From Octopus sinensis (lineage: Eukaryota), in NCBI RefSeq assembly GCF_006345805.1, contig NC_043006.1, positions 64,914,001-64,978,000 on the forward strand: 64,000 bases of DNA. Reading direction: 5' to 3'. Both the position numbers and the translations under genes were made by a program. The number at the start of each line of letters is the position of its first letter. Positions within the stretch are counted from its first letter, which is position 1. Below the pieces are notes generated by a model. That model saw nothing but the letters and a program-made list of their open reading frames with translations, did no database searches and was not told the origin of the DNA. This document shows positions 20,682-52,578 of the stretch, one piece after another.

Positions 20682-21989
20682 GTAAGTCTTCTGGAATTAT
20701 TATTATTATTATTAAGGCGGTGAGCTGGCAGAATTGTTAGCACGCTGAACGGAATGCTTCCTGTATTTTGCTCATCGCTATGTTCTGAGTTCAAATTCCA
20801 CCGGGGTTGACTTTGCCTTTCATCCTTTCAGGGTCAATAAATTAAGTACCAGTTGAATCCTGGGATCGATGTAATTGACTGTCTCCCCTCCCTACAAAAT
20901 CCAAGCCTTGTGCCTATAGAAGGAGGGATTATTATTATTAAGGGGGCAAGCTCGCAGAAGCGTTAGCACACTAGGCAAAATGCTTCCTGGTATTCTGTTC
21001 TTCATGTTCTGACTTCAAATTCTGCCAAGGTTTGACTTAGCCTTTCATCCTTTTGGGGTCAATAAAATAAGTACCAGCTACACACTGGGATTGATGTAAT
21101 CAACTATCCCCCTCCCTAAATTTCAGGCCTTGTGCCTATAGGAGAAAGGATTATTATTATTATTATCATTCATCGTCGTCATTGTTTAACGTCTGCTTTT
21201 CAAGCTGGCATGGGTTGGACGGTTGGACTGAGGGCTGGCAAGCCAGAAGGCTGTACCAGGCTCCAATCTGATCTGGCAAGGTTTCTATAGCTGGATGCCC
21301 TTCCTAATGCCAACTACTCTGAGAGTGTAATGGGTGCTTTTTATGTGCCACCAGCATGGGAGCCAGTCAGGCAGCACTGGCATCGACCATGCTTGAATGG
21401 GATGTGAACATATATAATAACATAGTATAATGTTCAACAATAATGAATGGAAATAGAAACAGCAGGGATAAGTATAGAAAGAAGAAAAACCTGTCATACT
21501 CAGGTGGTGTGATTTTAGCAGGATCAACATCTCTGAGCCAAGCACAATTTAAAGCTTGTTCAGCACTGCATTGCCGACTTGGATCATGTTCTAACATATG
21601 ATCAAGCAGGTCTAGAGCTGGCTTGGGAATAAAGGAAAATTATTATTATATAGGTGGTGAGCTGGTAGAATTGTTAGCATGCCAGGCATCGTCAGCATCG
21701 CTGCCGCCGTCGTCTTTATTGTCGGGATGTATAAGATAGCGCTGCTGTACTGTGAATATTATTTAATATATGAGGGTGTGATGCTTAACCCTTTCGTTAC
21801 CAACCTGGCTGAAACCAGCTTTGACTCTGAGTATAAATGTCTTGTTTTCATAAGTTTTGAATTAAAATTTTCCACCAAACCTTAGTCACAATTTATGTTC
21901 CTAACACTAGCTGAATGATAACTAAGTTATTTTACTAAATTCTTTGTTATATTTAAAGTAATTGAAAGAAATACAGTAACAAAAGGGTT

Positions 21990-25366: not shown

Positions 25367-25692
25367 GTTTACATTTATCTCTATGACAGATTTCTTTCTT
25401 ACAGGTTCAGGTATGCCCCAAGTATATTTGAACTGGTAAACAAGTTTATACATACATATGTGTGTGTGTGTGGTGGGATTCTACACAGTTACCATCTACT
25501 AAATTTCCCCACCAGGCATTTGTCAGCCCAAGGTGCTGTACAGTGGGATTGAACCACACAACCATGCCTGTGTCTTTACTAAATTCTTTTTGTCTGGATT
25601 AGTTTGTCCTTAATTTAAGCAGGACATATTGATTTTTGCAAACAGCTCCAGTGTCTGGATGGGTGATTTATTAACTTGGTTTTCTGTTTCAG

Positions 25693-27362: not shown

Positions 27363-28804
27363 TTGTTTTCCAAAACTGTTTTATATATTCTTCCATAATT
27401 CATAATCTTTGCAATATGACTCCATCACAATTTTCTCATTTGTCCTCATAATGTCCACTTTCACTCTTGTGGCAAATAAATGAAATAATTTATTCTTTTC
27501 TAAGCTGGCTACATCAGTACAATAATTAGAAAACCATCAAGAGACTTTATAGTGTTAAATTTAATGATTTTTGGCTCAATCCATTGTAGTAGCTGTGGTC
27601 ATACTTCAGCATTGTTGCACTTTTTTTTTGAAAGCTTTTCTCAGAAAAATCATCCTGGGTCCTATATGCAAAGTTGGGCTTATATTACATGGAACCCTTT
27701 AGCATTCAGATCATTCTGTCAAGTGTAGCACTTATTTATTCACATTGTTTTGGAATTAATCATGCATTGTCTCGTAGCTTTGACATTTCAGTGATTTACT
27801 GGTTTAGTTTTAGAATGACATTGTAGGATAGATGTGAAAGGCTGGATTTGGTCAGTTTGAACATGAAATGGGTGGAATATTTTGGCTGGATGTGGCAGGT
27901 TTAACCTTAGTCATAATTTATGTTCCTAACACTAGCTTAATGATAACTAAGTTATTTTACTAAATTCTTTGAAAGAAACACAGAGCATCTCAAAATAAAT
28001 ACAGAGGATCAGAATCGAAATCGATCAATGGAAATTGCAGATGTGCTACCAGTGCCGGTGGCATGTAAGAGAACCATCCGTTCGCGACCGTTGCCCCGAC
28101 TGGCCTCGTGCCGGTGGCACATAAAAAGCACCATCCGTTCGTGGCCGTTTGCCAGCTCTGTCTGGCACCTGTGCGGGTGGCACGTAAAAAGCACCCACTA
28201 CACTCACGGAGTGGTTGGCGTTAGGAAGGGCATCCAGCCGTAGAAACACTGCCAGATCTGACTGGGCCCGATGAAGCCTTCTGGCTTCACAGACCCCAGT
28301 TGAACCGTCCAACCCATGCTAGCATGGAAAACGGACGCTAAACGATGATGATGATGCTGATGATGATGATAAAAGGGTTAATTGCACTAAAAAATGTTTT
28401 TGTGAATCTGCACCTCTGCAGTTGTGGTTCATCTAATATGCCTTTGCATCTTTTAGGTCTTTTAATATGGTAATTCATCATCATCATTTAATGTTTGTTC
28501 TCCATGCTGGCATGGGTTGGGCAGTTTGAATGGGCTGGCATGCTAGATAGCTGCACCAGGCTCCAGTTAGATTTGGCATGCTTTTCTACATCTGGATGCC
28601 CTTCCTAATGCCAACCACCCCGAGAGTGTAATGGGTGCTTTTACATGCCACCGGCATGGCTCCTATTTGTGTGACACCAGGGTGCGTTTATGTACCACTG
28701 GCACAGGTGCCTATTTGCGTGACACTGGTATCTGCCATGACTGTGATTTTGCTTGGTTTAATGGGTCTTCTCAAGCCTGACAAAATGTCAAAGGTCTCAA
28801 TCAT

Positions 28805-34881: not shown

Positions 34882-34993
34882 AACCAATGTTGATGCTGAC
34901 CGTCAAGTGTTTACAGTGCTGGCGCCAGCTCCTCGACCACTACCCAAAACTTACTTACTACAGATGGACATACAATTCCTTGATATAAAATAA
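34882..34993 (+). CDS. CLP1: CLP1 last coding exon: [37 protein letters not shown]
   Basis: Matches the human C-terminus [37 protein letters not shown]; stop TAA at 34991-34993. Confidence 0.96.
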
Positions 34994-35115: not shown

Positions 35116-35431
35116 TATTCTTTTTAAGGTTTTAAATCAGTGTTTCATGTTCTATTTTAATTTTAAAAGTATTCTCAATGTTGTATTTCAGTTTGTTCTA
35201 AATACTTGAGTCACAGGACATGCTTTAGAATTACAGCTACAACCCAACCAACAGTCTTACACATTGTTTCCATTCTTCCCCAATTTCACCTATATGACTT
35301 TAATCAGCCCAGGCCATAGTAAATACCAACATGTCATGCAGTATGATTGAACTCGGGACCCTATTACATTGATATAAACAGTCTAGATATTCTGGATAAC
35401 AGCAATGCCCTTTATTTAAAAAAAAAAAAAA

Positions 35432-35492
35432 TAGCACCCGGTGGAATTGAACCACCAACAACTGAATCATCAACTGTTTCACCAGAGATGCT
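35432..35492 (-). ncRNA. 61-nt tRNA-like (D-armless, mascRNA-like) element followed by a T14 tract
   Basis: Manual fold: 7-bp acceptor AGCATCT/GGGTGCT, discriminator A, perfect T-arm GGTGG-TTCAATT-CCACC, and 8-bp hairpin AACAGTTG/CAGTTGTT. A-box-like TGGTGAAACAG and B-box GGTTCAATTCC are present. Confidence 0.5.
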
Positions 35493-35527
35493 GCACAATA
35501 TATTTAAAGGATATTGGTCACCAGAAT

Positions 35528-35766
35528 ATAAATTGTCTTAACCCTTTCGTTACTGAATTTATTTTGAGATGCTCAGTGTTTCTTCCAATTATGTTAAATA
35601 TAACAAAGAATTAAGTAAAATAACATCGTTATCATTAAGCTAGAGTTAGGAACATAAATTGTGACTAAGGTTTGGTGGAAGGTTTTAATTCAGAACTTTT
35701 GAAAACCAGACATTTGTACTAAAGAGCCAGAGCCAGTTTCAGTCGGGTTGGTAACAAAAGGGTTAA
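35528..35766. mobile_element. piggyBac-like MITE (TTAA-ccctttcgttac ... gtaacaaaaggg-TTAA); related copies 21785-22311 and 27900-28382, both interrupted
   Basis: Terminal inverted repeats with TTAA flanks; shared internal sequence among copies. Confidence 0.75.
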
Positions 35767-38528: not shown

Positions 38529-38845
38529 TATAATTATAAGCATAATTATAATTAGGGTTTAGCAAAATTGCTTCACCACATACCGAAATTTAGAAATAGC
38601 AGTTATATACTATTCTACTACCATAAGATATCTCCCAGACAGCAATACTCTACAACTCACGCAAGTAAAGAGAAAAAATAACGAATCCACCCAGCTTCGT
38701 TATTCGCTATTTTTTTCTCTTTACCTGCGTGAGTTGGGAGTATTGTTACCTGGTAGTAGAATAGTATTTAACTGCTATTCCTAAATTACGGTAAGTGGTG
38801 AAGCAATTTTGCTGAACCCTAATTATAATTATGCTTATAATTATA
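38529..38845. mobile_element. Near-full-length palindromic foldback MITE (~315 bp)
   Basis: Left arm tataattataagcataattataattagggtttagcaaaattgcttcacca... mirrors the right arm ...tggtgaagcaattttgctgaaccctaattataattatgcttataattata; the inner arms also pair. Confidence 0.78.
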
Positions 38846-48194: not shown

Positions 48195-48945
48195 GTGTTC
48201 ATACTCGACAGAATGTAAGAACCTTGAGAGAAAAGTTGGACCTAAGAAGCATCAGTTGCAAGAGAGACGTTTGCACTGGTATGGTTATGTGACGAGAATG
48301 GATGAAAATATTTGTGTGAAAAAGTGCCACACCCTAGCGGTTGAGGGAACTTGTGGAAGAGGTAGACCCAGGAAAACCTGGGACGAGGTGGTGAAGCACG
48401 ACCTTCAAACTTTAGGTCTCACCGAGGAAATGACTAGAGACCGAGACCTACGGAAGTATGCTGTGCGTGAGAAGACTCGACAGGACAAGTGAGACCATAA
48501 CCCATGGCCTCTACCTGGGATGTGGCCAATCCACTTATGCATACCTTTCCTTCTTGGGACACAAAACTATACTTGTGAAGACCTGTTGAGGCATGTGAGA
48601 GTCAGAATCAAAATCGAAATCGATCAACATCAATAGAAATTGTAGGTGTGATACCTGTGCCGGTGGGCATGTAAGTGAACCATCCGAACGTGGATGTTGC
48701 CAGCGCCGCCCCGACGGTGGCACGTAAAAAGCACCATCCGACCGTGGCCGTTTGCCAGCCCTGTCTGGCAGCTGTGCCAGTGGCACGTAAAAAGCACCCA
48801 CTACACTCACGGAGTGGTTGCCGTTAGGAAGGGCATCCAGCCGTAGAAACATTGCCAGATCAGACTGGGCCTGGTGCAGCCTTCTAGCTTCCCAGACCCC
48901 AGTTGAACTGTCCAACCCATGCTAGCATGGAAAGCGGACGCTAAA
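48195..48945 (+). mobile_element. RTE LINE 3' end with a 12-bp target-site duplication (tgaataataata)
   Basis: QERRLHWYGYVTRMDENICVKKCHTLAVEGTCGRGRPRKTWDEVVKHDL plus 3'UTR; direct repeats at 48183-48194 and 48946-48957. Confidence 0.9.
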
Positions 48946-49059: not shown

Positions 49060-52000
49060 AACAACAAACAAAATGAGGACAACTACCCGTCAAATATAAA
49101 TAATGTACATAATTCCTCATCCCTTAAATATAGAACTGCTAAAGGGTTAAGACAAACAAAGTATCGCTAAGCATTTTGTCCAGCATGCTAAACGACAACA
49201 ATAATAATGATGATGATGTTAGTATTCAATTGTTGTGGGATTCATTCAAATGAAGTAGATTTAAAGATTGTAATATACTAATTGTCCAAGGACCCACAAT
49301 TCCTATTTGGAATCTTACCTGCTGAGCTGTTTTAGCTGTTGTTGTTGTTGGTCTTTAGAAAAGGAATGGTGTCTGTCCACCAGTGCCTCACTCTTGAGTA
49401 TTTTCTCTCTCTTTGTCTCTCCTTCACCTACTTGTTCTACTACTATTAGACATATGAGGCACATGGCTCAGTGGTTAGAGATATTTGATTCATAATCATA
49501 AGGTTGTGAGTTCAATTTCTGATGGCATGTTGTGTCCTTGAGCAAAACACTTTATTTCATGTTGCTCCAGTCCACTGAGCTGGCAAAAATGAGTGGCATC
49601 AGCCTTGTCACACACTGTGGAATGCTCAGCCACTTGCTTGTTAATTTCACAAGCCAGGTGTTCCACTGAATGGATCAACTGGAACCCTGGTTGTCATAAC
49701 CAACGAAATACCAGATATATGAGAGAAGAGATATCATGTCCCCAACCCACGCCTTCTTTATTATTCCCTAATCTGCTCTTGCCAAGTGCTGTGGAGCAGT
49801 GTTTGTTCAAATGCCTTTCCTCTGATTCATAGATGTTGCCAGTTAAAGAAGCCACAGTGACACCTGTTTTTCTGACTGATTTTCACAGGACAGTTCCTTT
49901 AAAGGTCAGAGTGGACTTGTTACCTTGAATGACTCTTATAAACGATTCTTTTACTGACCAAAGACAGCCTGCTTCTCCACCTGTGACCCATGGGATTTTC
50001 TGAATAGCATGCCTAATGAGAAATTACTTTGAATTTTTTTAGTAATGCAGCTCACTTAAGATCACTCATGTCTCATATGGCCTGCTTCTTGTAAAAGGTT
50101 GCCCATGCCTGCTCTATATGATCCCTCAACCTGCTAGAAATAGCAAGCAGACTTCTCAAATTACACTCTATTGATTTTGAAAAGGAAGTCACATTAGCGT
50201 ATGTAGTCCTAGATACACTGTCCAAATAAAAGACATGACTGGCACTTTAGGGACACTTTTGACTACAGGTCAGCTCATTCAGCCAAAGTGACTTGGAGCT
50301 AAATAATGGCGAGATATTTTATAATAGCATTGTTCATAACTACTTCCCCCACACCTCTTTCTCTCCCTTTCTATTGTCTGTTTTTTGACATTGACTTCTG
50401 CAGAACCCCACCCACCACATTGTCATTTTTCTCTCTGATAACTGGTGCTGGTACCACATAAAAAGCACCCAGTACATTCTGTAAAGTGGCTGATGTTAGG
50501 AGAGTCATCTAGCTGAAGAAACACAATGGAGAGGTCATCTACCTGAAGGAACCAGGCCAGAAGAGACAATAGAGTCTGTTGCACCCCCTGGCCTTTACCA
50601 GCTCTTGTCAAACCATCCAACCCATGCCAGCATAGAAAACAGATGTTAAATGATGATGTTGATAACCCCTACTCCCTCATCTACTTCACCTTTTCTCTCT
50701 CTCTCCTCTTATTTAGGTCTCTCCTGAGCCCTTAAAGACTCATAAGCCAGAGCTTAATCCAGTTTAGTTTCCATTACTTATAAATGACTGAGATGATAGC
50801 AATCCCCTGTTCTGAGCAGGATGCTGGTTTCTCTCAGGGTTGACTTCCCAGAAATTGCTGGAATTCATTTTACAGCTGAGTGGACCGTGGCAACAGGAAA
50901 TGAGGTGTTTCACACAAGAACACAATGCATGGCCTCGTATCTTTTATCTGTTATCTTTTACTTGTTTCAGTCATCTGACTGTGGCCATGCTGGGGCACTG
51001 CCTTCAAAGAAATCAACCCCAGGATTTACTTCTTTTTCTTAAGCTGGGTATTTATTGTATCAGTCTCTTTTGTCAAACTGCTAAGTTACGGGGACATAAA
51101 CACATCAATGCCGGTTGTCAAGCAGTGGTGGGGGACAAACACAGGCACAAAGAAACACACACACACACACACACAACAGGGTTCTTTCAGTTTCTGTCTC
51201 CCAAATCCTTCCACAAGGGTTTGGTTGGTCTGAGGCTATAGTAGAAGACACTTGTCCTAGGTGCCATGCAGAGGGATTGAACCTAGAACCAAGATCTTAT
51301 GATCATGAGTGCAACCCACCAACCACTAGTTTAAATGCATTCACTCTGCCTCCCCTGCTTTAGTTAATCTATCTTTCTTCTTTATTTCCCCCACCCCCTA
51401 TTTCTCTCCTTCCAGGCAATGGACCCTCCATTGATAATTTCAACTGTTGTTATTCCACTTACTTCAGTATCAACTCTGTCTCAATTTTTATTTTGGATAA
51501 CTGACAAGGTGGACGAGTCCTTGACCAATGGTTGGAAGGTTACTGGGTCAAGCGGAAGATCTGTACAATCAGACAACAGTTGGACATCAACTAGCAAGGG
51601 AGCTACTGCTGCAGGGTAGCCCCACCATCGACCAAGCTTGTTGCATGCTTCTGCACCGCTTGATACTTGGCATGGAGGCCCAAGAAGCAATCCAGTGGGG
51701 GAGACAATGCCAGCTGCCTTACTCACCGTCCAAAGGAGTGTCACTCAAAGAATTCTGGACAGAACAGTCAATGTTGAAATGACAGGCAACCACTGCTGAC
51801 CTTCCACCAGGTGAGTGGCTTAGTACTTTGGCTGTTGCACTCATGATCACAAGGTCAAAGTTTCAATATCTGGACCGGGTGGTGTGTTGTGTTCTTGGGC
51901 AAAACACTTCATTTCCCATGGCTCCAGTCTCCTCAACCATAAATAAGTAACCCGGCAATGGACTGGTGTCCCATTTAGGGGGAATGTTGTAATATTGGTC

Positions 52001-52578
52001 GTTTATATGCTGTGGAAATTAGAAACTGGATTTATGAGTCTTAAGGCTTGAGACAGGGGTCTAAGAAAATGCTGCAAGGCATTCTATTGAAGATAATAAT
52101 AATAATAATGATTTATTTTATTGGCCACAAGGGCATAAAACGTTGAGAACAACATCAAAGGACAATAATGGTAATAATAATAATAATCCTTTCTACTAAA
52201 GGCACAAGGCCTGAAATTTTGTGGGAGGGGGGGGGCTAGTCAATTACATTGACTCCAGTGCGAAACAGGTACTTTGACACTAAAAGGATGAACGACAAAG
52301 TCAATCTCAGTGGAATTTGAACTCAGAACGTAAAGATGGATGAAATACCGCTAAGCATTTTGTCTGGTGTGCTAATGCTTCTACTAGCTTACCACCTTTA
52401 ATAATAATAATAATGATTTCTTTTTTTCATTTATTCCCTTTCTACTAAATGCACAAGGCCTGAAATTTGGAGGGAGGTGAGTAGTTGATTACATCGACCC
52501 CAGTGTTTCACTGGTACTTAATTTATCAACTCCCAAAGGATGAAATGCAAAGTCAACCTTGGTGGAATAATAATAATA

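Follow-up and report, generated by a model that had tools for sequence, protein, structure and literature searches.

A tRNA-like domain at the apex of a long, conserved stem downstream of CLP1 in octopods

Introduction

Among animals, recruitment of RNase P and RNase Z to transcripts other than tRNAs by a tRNA-like module is known essentially only from vertebrate MALAT1 and NEAT1, which have been called the only long non-coding RNAs to be matured by the tRNA machinery (PMC12941219). The locus described here raises the question of whether octopods possess a module of a comparable kind and, if so, what it consists of, what would transcribe it, and whether selection maintains it as an RNA or as a stretch of DNA. 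It lies in a segment of 64,000 nucleotides from Octopus sinensis (contig NC_043006.1, positions 64,914,001 to 64,978,000 of the forward strand), hereafter the window, whose own numbering is used for all coordinates. Over positions 1-44993 it matches CM016868.1 of GCA_006345805.1 with 100% identity. A sequence-only reading of this window had proposed a mascRNA-like tRNA mimic immediately downstream of CLP1, the gene for a tRNA-splicing kinase. A selectively kept, structurally distinct cassette in a cephalopod would mean that this solution arose more than once, and would offer a small RNA open to testing in a clade with unusual RNA biology. The comparisons presented below make it credible that the locus holds a conserved, structured non-coding element that has so far gone undescribed.

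Genomic setting of the element

CLP1 occupies the plus strand, with exons between 15405 and 34993 that were placed by tblastn and were confirmed by homology to O. bimaculoides CLP1, by the Pfam family Clp1 (PF06807) in the last exon, and by exon-wise conservation with Argonauta. The label "CLP1 (minus strand)" in the sequence-only reading thus fits the tRNA-like element, which is indeed on the minus strand, and not CLP1 itself, to which the element runs antisense 439 nt past the stop codon. The element probably lies past the CLP1 poly(A) site. The features of the locus are:

34883-34993, plus strand: last coding exon of CLP1 with its stop codon (34991-34993), from tblastn, Pfam and homologues
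35110, plus strand: likely CLP1 poly(A) signal AATAAA, 117 nt past the stop
35404-35533, strand not assigned: conserved block as found by blastn with Argonauta hians (132 alignment columns, 84% identical)
35505-35538, minus strand: 5' (leader) arm of the outer stem, paired with 35376-35414 in each species' own MFE structure
35493-35504, minus strand: leader spacer AAATATATTGTGC, 12 nt, single-stranded (alignments A2 and A4)
35492-35432, minus strand: tRNA-like domain, 61 nt, RNAfold -20.1 kcal/mol
35492-35486 (AGCATCT) with 35439-35433 (GGGTGCT), minus strand: acceptor stem, 7 bp
35485-35479, minus strand: 7-nt linker CTGGTGA, containing GG
35478-35457, minus strand: hairpin of 8-9 bp, AACAGTTG-ATGATT-CAGTTGTT
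35456-35440, minus strand: T arm with 5-bp stem GGTGG/CCACC, canonical TTCAATT loop and closing G-C
35432, minus strand: discriminator A (U in Argonauta)
35431-35418, minus strand: T14 run, a U-rich trailer or Pol III terminator
35417-35411, minus strand: AAATAAA, overlapped by the 3' arm of the outer stem in Octopus only
35376-35414, minus strand: 3' (trailer) arm of the outer stem, from the inverted repeat, MFE structures and covariation
35541-35763, strand not assigned: MITE at a TTAA target, exactly at the base of the outer stem, with copies at 21785-21971 and 27903-28004

In four annotated genomes no gene is annotated within 10 kb downstream of CLP1, and between 36 and 64 kb the window contains no convincing exon or minus-strand host gene, only repeat-derived ORFs. 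The last CLP1 exon and the element, tested for editing-complementary pairing, share no meaningful inverted repeat. The sequence-only reading had noted a MITE interrupting the region upstream of the tRNA-like fold; this MITE, 48 nt upstream of the tRNA-like domain, is found in O. sinensis and O. vulgaris and not in O. bimaculoides or Argonauta; it is lineage-specific, so that an insertion this close to the domain is evidently tolerated.

Other features of the surroundings were recorded in passing. A diverged, tRNA-derived SINE-like fragment (GAGTTCAATC...ACTG...GGGCTGA...) lies at ~35236-35365 (minus strand; compare 25455-25572, minus strand), between CLP1 and the cassette; present in Octopus and not in Argonauta, it largely explains why the element is farther from the CLP1 stop in Octopus (~440 nt) than in Argonauta (~310 nt). 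Within a CLP1 intron, an ORF at 21370-21639 (minus strand) looks like the C-terminus of a kinase domain of the CDK type but scores only 12.9 bits against Pfam Pkinase; with no conservation in Argonauta and no annotated gene at this place in the four genomes, it is probably a pseudogene fragment. An ORF at 48196-48489 (plus strand) has, by eye only, the look of the C-terminal part of a LINE reverse transcriptase (…GRGRPRKTWDEVVKHDL…). A near-perfect foldback palindrome of ~200 bp with an internal T-run occupies 38587-38784 of the window (51900-52110 in the O. vulgaris locus) and occurs in O. sinensis and O. vulgaris only.

Architecture and fold

Read on the minus strand, the tRNA-like domain is AGCATCT-CTGGTGA-AACAGTTG-ATGATT-CAGTTGTT-GGTGG-TTCAATT-CCACC-GGGTGCT-A, with T14 and then AAATAAA directly on its 3' side. 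These parts are exactly those that the sequence-only reading had listed, and the three-way structure it proposed is the RNAfold MFE of the 61-nt domain (-20.1 kcal/mol, z = -2.44), equalled by 5 of 200 shuffles. Four of its pairs are G-U. The acceptor and T stems form a coaxial helix of 12 bp (7 + 5), and the D arm and anticodon are absent. Helices of these acceptor/T dimensions are recognised by RNase P, RNase Z and the CCA-adding enzyme.

The conserved unit exceeds the tRNA-like fold, which is flanked on each side by inverted repeats of ~35 nt. Upstream, 34 nt (35538-35505) pair with 39 nt past the T-run (35414-35376) in an imperfect outer stem of ~32 bp, the apex of which is made up of the 12-nt leader, the tRNA-like domain and the T-run. 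In Argonauta, an inverted repeat of 27 nt, 81% complementary, brackets the element, and the same is seen in Octopus when bulges are allowed. Independent folds yield the same architecture, at -41.2 kcal/mol (z -2.5) for the Octopus window and -39.9 kcal/mol (z -4.9) for Argonauta. The 5' arm includes the TATA-like TTTATATT, at -40 to -33 relative to the first nucleotide of the tRNA-like domain. The last 7 nt of the leader spacer, ATTGTGC, are invariant across all species.

Just 5' of the tRNA-like domain, TTGTGCAG resembles a splice acceptor. A frame, C|ATC...TAA (ISGETVDDSVVGGSIPPGAIFFFF*; 35494-35417, minus strand), is open in Octopus and, in changed form, in Argonauta, with its TAA after the T-run. 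A coding exon was nevertheless rejected: the frame was judged non-coding because all of its substitutions (5 of 5) are non-synonymous, the leader carries a 1-nt indel, and open frames over the element share no words with any of 5.8 billion proteins.

Conservation and copy number

The CLP1 loci of O. sinensis, O. vulgaris, O. bimaculoides and Argonauta hians, reached via the CLP1 protein, were compared, and the element was found at the orthologous site and in the same orientation in all four. Among the three Octopus species, the 164-nt block differs by 3 substitutions and by the length of the T-run, and the 5' arm is invariant; presence alone is uninformative at this level because the flanks are ~93% identical and the species are too close. 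The split between Octopus and Argonauta goes back ~100 million years or more. Across the whole locus, the unique collinear matches between the two genera are ten CLP1 exon blocks and 35404-35533 only, the latter at an identity (84%) that equals the best CLP1 exons, while the remaining non-coding sequence is unalignable. Conservation at the level of exons argues that the block is under purifying selection, and by the same alignments no other non-coding part of the CLP1 locus is shared by Octopus and Argonauta. That a repeat inserted independently in the two lineages is, judging from these loci, very unlikely because no other copy was seen.

Self-BLAST and pattern search gave no second copy of the element in the window, and two covariance models, R1 (65 nt) and R2 (164 nt), recovered only the orthologues from 265-273 kb of octopod and mollusc DNA; at ~265 kb, such a copy-number search detects only families of roughly tens of thousands of copies. 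Further afield, the element is absent from the 3' UTRs, at most 256 nt long, of the next CLP1 cluster (73% identity, Logan transcripts), and a metagenome scan with a 31-mer of the element returned 0 matches. An ancient tRNA gene linked to CLP1 was also considered and rejected, the CLP1 loci of Haliotis and Mya having neither a tRNA nor a match to the covariance models.

These data bear directly on one rival explanation, a functionless relic, whether a decayed tRNA or tRNA-Sec pseudogene, the head of a SINE, or a MITE, that is merely alignable. Repeats are abundant nearby, with the SINE-like fragment directly downstream of the element and the MITE directly upstream, and the failure of all tRNA models (see below) would also suit a relic. 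We disfavour this explanation as very improbable: a relic would not be expected to match Argonauta as well as the best exons do when the other non-coding bases of the locus cannot be aligned, to lack further copies in ~265 kb, or to change, as described next, in a pattern that preserves structure.

Covariation

Across four sequences, which amount effectively to one deep split (Octopus-Argonauta), 96% of the cells of the tRNA-like domain are paired. One pair changes from C-G to U-A, two switch between G-C and G-U, and two helix-end pairs are broken, while none of the 20 nucleotides in the linker, the hairpin loop and the T loop changes. For the whole block, a hand-made structure-aware alignment equates 41 of the 53 pairs in the Octopus MFE with homologous pairs in the independent Argonauta MFE, and contains 3 compensatory pairs and 5 one-sided changes that still pair; the broken pairs fall mostly in the basal helix, which is poorly alignable. 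The 5' arm is conserved in Argonauta with a C-G to U-A covariation. Random placement of the 20 core substitutions would be expected to break 7.2 +/- 1.9 pairs against the 2 observed (P = 0.005), and yielded at least 3 compensatory pairs in 0.5% of runs. A covariance-model alignment, being fitted to the structure and so biased towards pairing, has 98.5% of its cells paired and 5 pairs in which both partners differ, values that 0 of 500 shuffles matched.

Counts for the 3' arm are taken from the hand and covariance-model alignments because MAFFT and the pairwise aligner misplace gaps there, and one compensatory pair depends on how gaps are placed in this arm. Two compensatory pairs recur wherever both sides align ungapped, one in the hairpin and the other in the apical part of the outer stem, with TAAAG and ATTGC as anchors; at the latter, a plain pairwise aligner opens a gap. 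The sequence-only reading had said that dispersed copies, absence at orthologous loci or a lack of covariation would weigh against it, and the comparison went its way on each: no second copy in 265 kb, the element present in four octopod species, and compensatory changes between them.

A separate observation concerns the seventh acceptor pair (35439; alignment A3, column 54), which is U-G in O. sinensis and Argonauta and U.U in O. vulgaris and O. bimaculoides. This pattern requires two changes or an old polymorphism, although O. sinensis and O. vulgaris are very close.

Strand asymmetry

In the window, the 61-nt domain folds at -20.1 kcal/mol on the minus strand and at -11.5 kcal/mol on the plus strand, with a similar gap in the three other species, such that the minus strand is more stable by ~10 kcal/mol in all four, for 61-nt and 175-nt versions alike. 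The four G-U wobbles that had been said to work on the minus strand only are real pairs there, and on the plus strand the proposed structure is lost. The plus strand would have 6 non-canonical pairs, as C.A mismatches, where the minus strand has 0 in Octopus and 2 in Argonauta; only the minus strand is compatible with a G-C to G-U change in the Argonauta T stem; and the canonical T loop exists on the minus strand only, the plus strand reading AATTGAA. The outer stem forms on either strand, at -30 to -37 kcal/mol on the plus.

This last point leaves room for a quite different explanation, in which the functional form is a long plus-strand hairpin within a read-through or long-3'UTR RNA of CLP1, serving as a target of ADAR or Staufen or as a termination or processing signal. 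Such a hairpin would lie 300-440 nt past the CLP1 stop in Octopus and Argonauta, in a zone that is transcribed past the likely poly(A) signal, and in all four species an A-run (A14 in the window) is followed by the mirror tRNA-like fold, the same order as in MALAT1. However, the plus-strand structure is the weaker one in every species, loses the cloverleaf, converts conserved G-U pairs, two of which belong to the acceptor stem, into C.A mismatches and has no T loop, and the AATAAA of CLP1 already occurs 117 nt past the stop; we regard this explanation as distinctly improbable.

Strand asymmetry and covariation also bear on the possibility that there is no functional RNA and that the element, derived from a tRNA or a MITE, was co-opted at the DNA level as a B-box site bound by TFIIIC, an insulator or an enhancer. 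It is well known that tRNA-derived repeats can be co-opted as conserved non-coding elements. The B box here is intact and invariant, the palindromic architecture is foldback- or MITE-like, and the position between CLP1 and a gene desert of >10 kb would suit such a role. A protein-binding site does not, however, predict compensatory and wobble-compatible one-sided changes with so few broken pairs (P about 0.005), nor an asymmetry between G-U on one strand and A-C on the other, and neither a TSD, by reading, nor another member of a family, in ~265 kb, was found. A DNA-level element is improbable in our estimation; even as such, it would be the sole conserved non-coding element of the locus and worth annotating.

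Transcription and processing

The closest rival to the reading that we favour was already offered by the sequence-only reading, namely a stand-alone Pol III gene; its product would be a tRNA-like RNA of ~61-70 nt. Transcription, driven by the internal B box, a motif resembling an A box and TATA-like elements further upstream, would start a few nt upstream of 35492, T14 would terminate, and the product would be processed like a pre-tRNA by RNase P, RNase Z and La, the palindromic flanks being promoter or other DNA elements, or a relic. Much of the sequence is in keeping with this. GGTTCAATTCC agrees with the B-box consensus; TGGTGAAACAG agrees with TRGYNNANNNG but is only an approximate A box. 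The T-run occupies the same spot in all four species, as T14, T5GT7, TTCT15 and T10CTCT, with a run of at least 5 starting 0-3 nt past the acceptor end in each. Upstream, 45 nt are conserved, including TTTATATT at -40, and a MITE insertion at -48 was tolerated; the T arm shares its sequence with tRNA-Sec, the gene for which uses an upstream promoter. Nor is a host transcript evident in the annotation of four genomes or at 36-64 kb of the window. The T-run right after the acceptor, the good B box and the upstream TATA-like motifs are exactly the features of a Pol III gene, and they count against our own preference, as do the lack of a visible host gene and of any Rfam family in its support.

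What weakens the Pol III gene, its B box and T-run notwithstanding, is that the 3' arm shows conservation and covariation with the 5' arm although it lies past T14, out of reach of a Pol III transcript; an RNA ending at T14 could not form the outer stem. In addition, the A at position 7 of the A box is C in Argonauta, and neither TATA-like motif is at the usual -30 position, barring a leader of ~9 nt. We consider a stand-alone Pol III gene somewhat unlikely.

Because T14 lies inside a conserved, co-varying outer stem, we favour Pol II read-through and mascRNA-style processing. In this preferred reading, which we hold tentatively as quite possible, 35376-35538 would encode a structured minus-strand RNA of ~160 nt, kept by selection in octopods, that is made as part of a Pol II precursor and processed in the manner of mascRNA. 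What the comparisons show directly is the sequence, its fold, orthologous conservation as strong as that of exons, covariation and strand asymmetry; transcription, the polymerase involved, cleavage by RNase P and RNase Z and any role downstream of these are what we infer, as follows. The precursor would need to span both arms, which implies a polymerase that reads through T14, most likely Pol II making a non-coding RNA that converges on CLP1. Cuts by RNase P just before the tRNA-like domain and by RNase Z after the discriminator would release a tRNA-like small RNA of ~61 nt that could receive CCA, as mascRNA does; the cleavage would also set the 3' end of the upstream RNA. The outer stem may serve to present the tRNA-like domain or to hold both flanks together.

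Comparison with known RNA families

Searches with models of known families assign the element to none of them. At gathering thresholds, Rfam gave no match for the element in the window, and the canonical tRNA model (RF00005) gave none even at E<=10. ARAGORN predicted 0 tRNA genes in the window and in the CLP1 loci, and none at a relaxed setting; its mitochondrial mode called D-armless tRNAs whose anticodon differs between species, and which therefore have no decoding identity. Within the tRNA clan, the best match in a 91-nt search is tRNA-Sec (RF01852; 13.1 bits, E 2.3, threshold 47), in an alignment that places the long hairpin on the variable arm and deletes the D and anticodon arms (35 model positions). 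The resemblance to tRNA-Sec extends to the T-arm 16-mer GTGGTTCAATTCCACC, which, as the sequence-only reading had recognised, is identical in human tRNA-Sec-TCA-1-1 (sequence from PMC10359600), and to a long helix abutting the T arm, comparable to the variable arm of tRNA-Sec. The acceptor/T geometry is, in contrast, 7/5 and not 9/4 or 8/5, and there is no conserved UCA anticodon; together with the failed models, this rules out a canonical tRNA or tRNA-Sec gene.

Several other identities were examined and set aside. A tRNA-derived SINE is at odds with the lack of a second copy in ~265 kb and with orthology to Argonauta at exon-level identity. Terminal inverted repeats of the sort that MITEs and foldback elements have are present, as the ~35-nt arms that flank the element; no TSD was found by reading, and no related copies in ~265 kb. 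The foldback of the O. vulgaris locus (51900-52110; window 38587-38784) was hit at 51936-52070 by the long-stem covariance model through its structure alone, its sequence being unrelated to the cassette. An animal pri-miRNA would fit the stem length of ~33-35 bp but not a "loop" that is a structured domain of 90 nt, and a search of the text supplementary files of an octopus miRNA catalogue (PMC9699675) found neither the arm nor the T-arm strings. Hammerhead, C/D snoRNA and triple-helix motifs were not found by reading.

Vault RNAs and the source genes of tRNA-derived SINEs have in common with the element a B box, an A-box-like motif, paired ends, an oligo-T tract adjoining the 3' end of the fold and, upstream, conserved AT-rich sequence. 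Vault RNAs are longer, however, and there is no Rfam Vault match; and, unlike Pol III small RNAs of these kinds, the element is a single orthologous copy without a dispersed family and has conserved complementary sequence past the terminator. The t-elements of plant mitochondria and the tRNA-like/pre-miRNA chimeras of viruses are reportedly tRNA-like folds within longer transcripts that act as cleavage signals for RNase P and RNase Z. They belong to another genome compartment or to viruses, bear no sequence relationship to the element, and sit beside a hairpin, whereas the tRNA-like domain of the element tops a long stem. Nothing that we found matches the layout seen here, in which a long leader-trailer stem carries the tRNA-like domain at its end.

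The closest likeness in principle is to mascRNA and menRNA, the 3' modules of MALAT1 and NEAT1. Like the element, these are tRNA-like folds of ~60 nt with an acceptor/T minihelix, reduced in their D and anticodon parts, non-decoding, and with a U-rich trailer next to them. The 61-nt fold, the 7 + 5 bp and the T loop that had suggested a mascRNA-like mimic thus stand; membership of the family does not, as the mascRNA/menRNA model (RF01684) has no match at its gathering score or at E<=10 (searched in 64 kb, 1 kb and 91 nt), so that the check with Infernal tRNA and mascRNA-menRNA models proposed by the sequence-only reading came out negative. Neither a U-rich ENE nor an A-rich tract occurs in 300+ nt upstream in O. 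bimaculoides, which is free of the MITE, or in Argonauta, which extends to uninterrupted loci the earlier remark that a MALAT1-type triple helix is missing upstream; the place directly before the tRNA-like domain is taken by the outer stem's 5' arm. With no RF01684 match and no upstream triple helix, there is no support for placing the element in the mascRNA/menRNA family.

A leader-trailer interaction is functionally important in the 3' maturation of MALAT1 (PMC8457004), but the corresponding helix of the octopod element is ~32 bp long and 12-18 nt away from the acceptor, and is not a short extension of the acceptor stem. The vertebrate modules come with an upstream triple helix, and the octopod element is without an ENE or A-rich module. 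That the latter is an independently evolved counterpart of the MALAT1/NEAT1 principle, a non-coding RNA convergent to CLP1, matured by RNase P and RNase Z and releasing a tRNA-like small RNA, is in our view unlikely, and much would follow if it were true. A conserved tRNA-like small RNA would be released beside the gene for the tRNA-splicing kinase CLP1, a fixed position next to a tRNA-splicing component that may be coincidence. The element would also be the first such module outside vertebrates and would represent a new architecture, in which a long leader-trailer stem stands where MALAT1 and NEAT1 have a triple helix.
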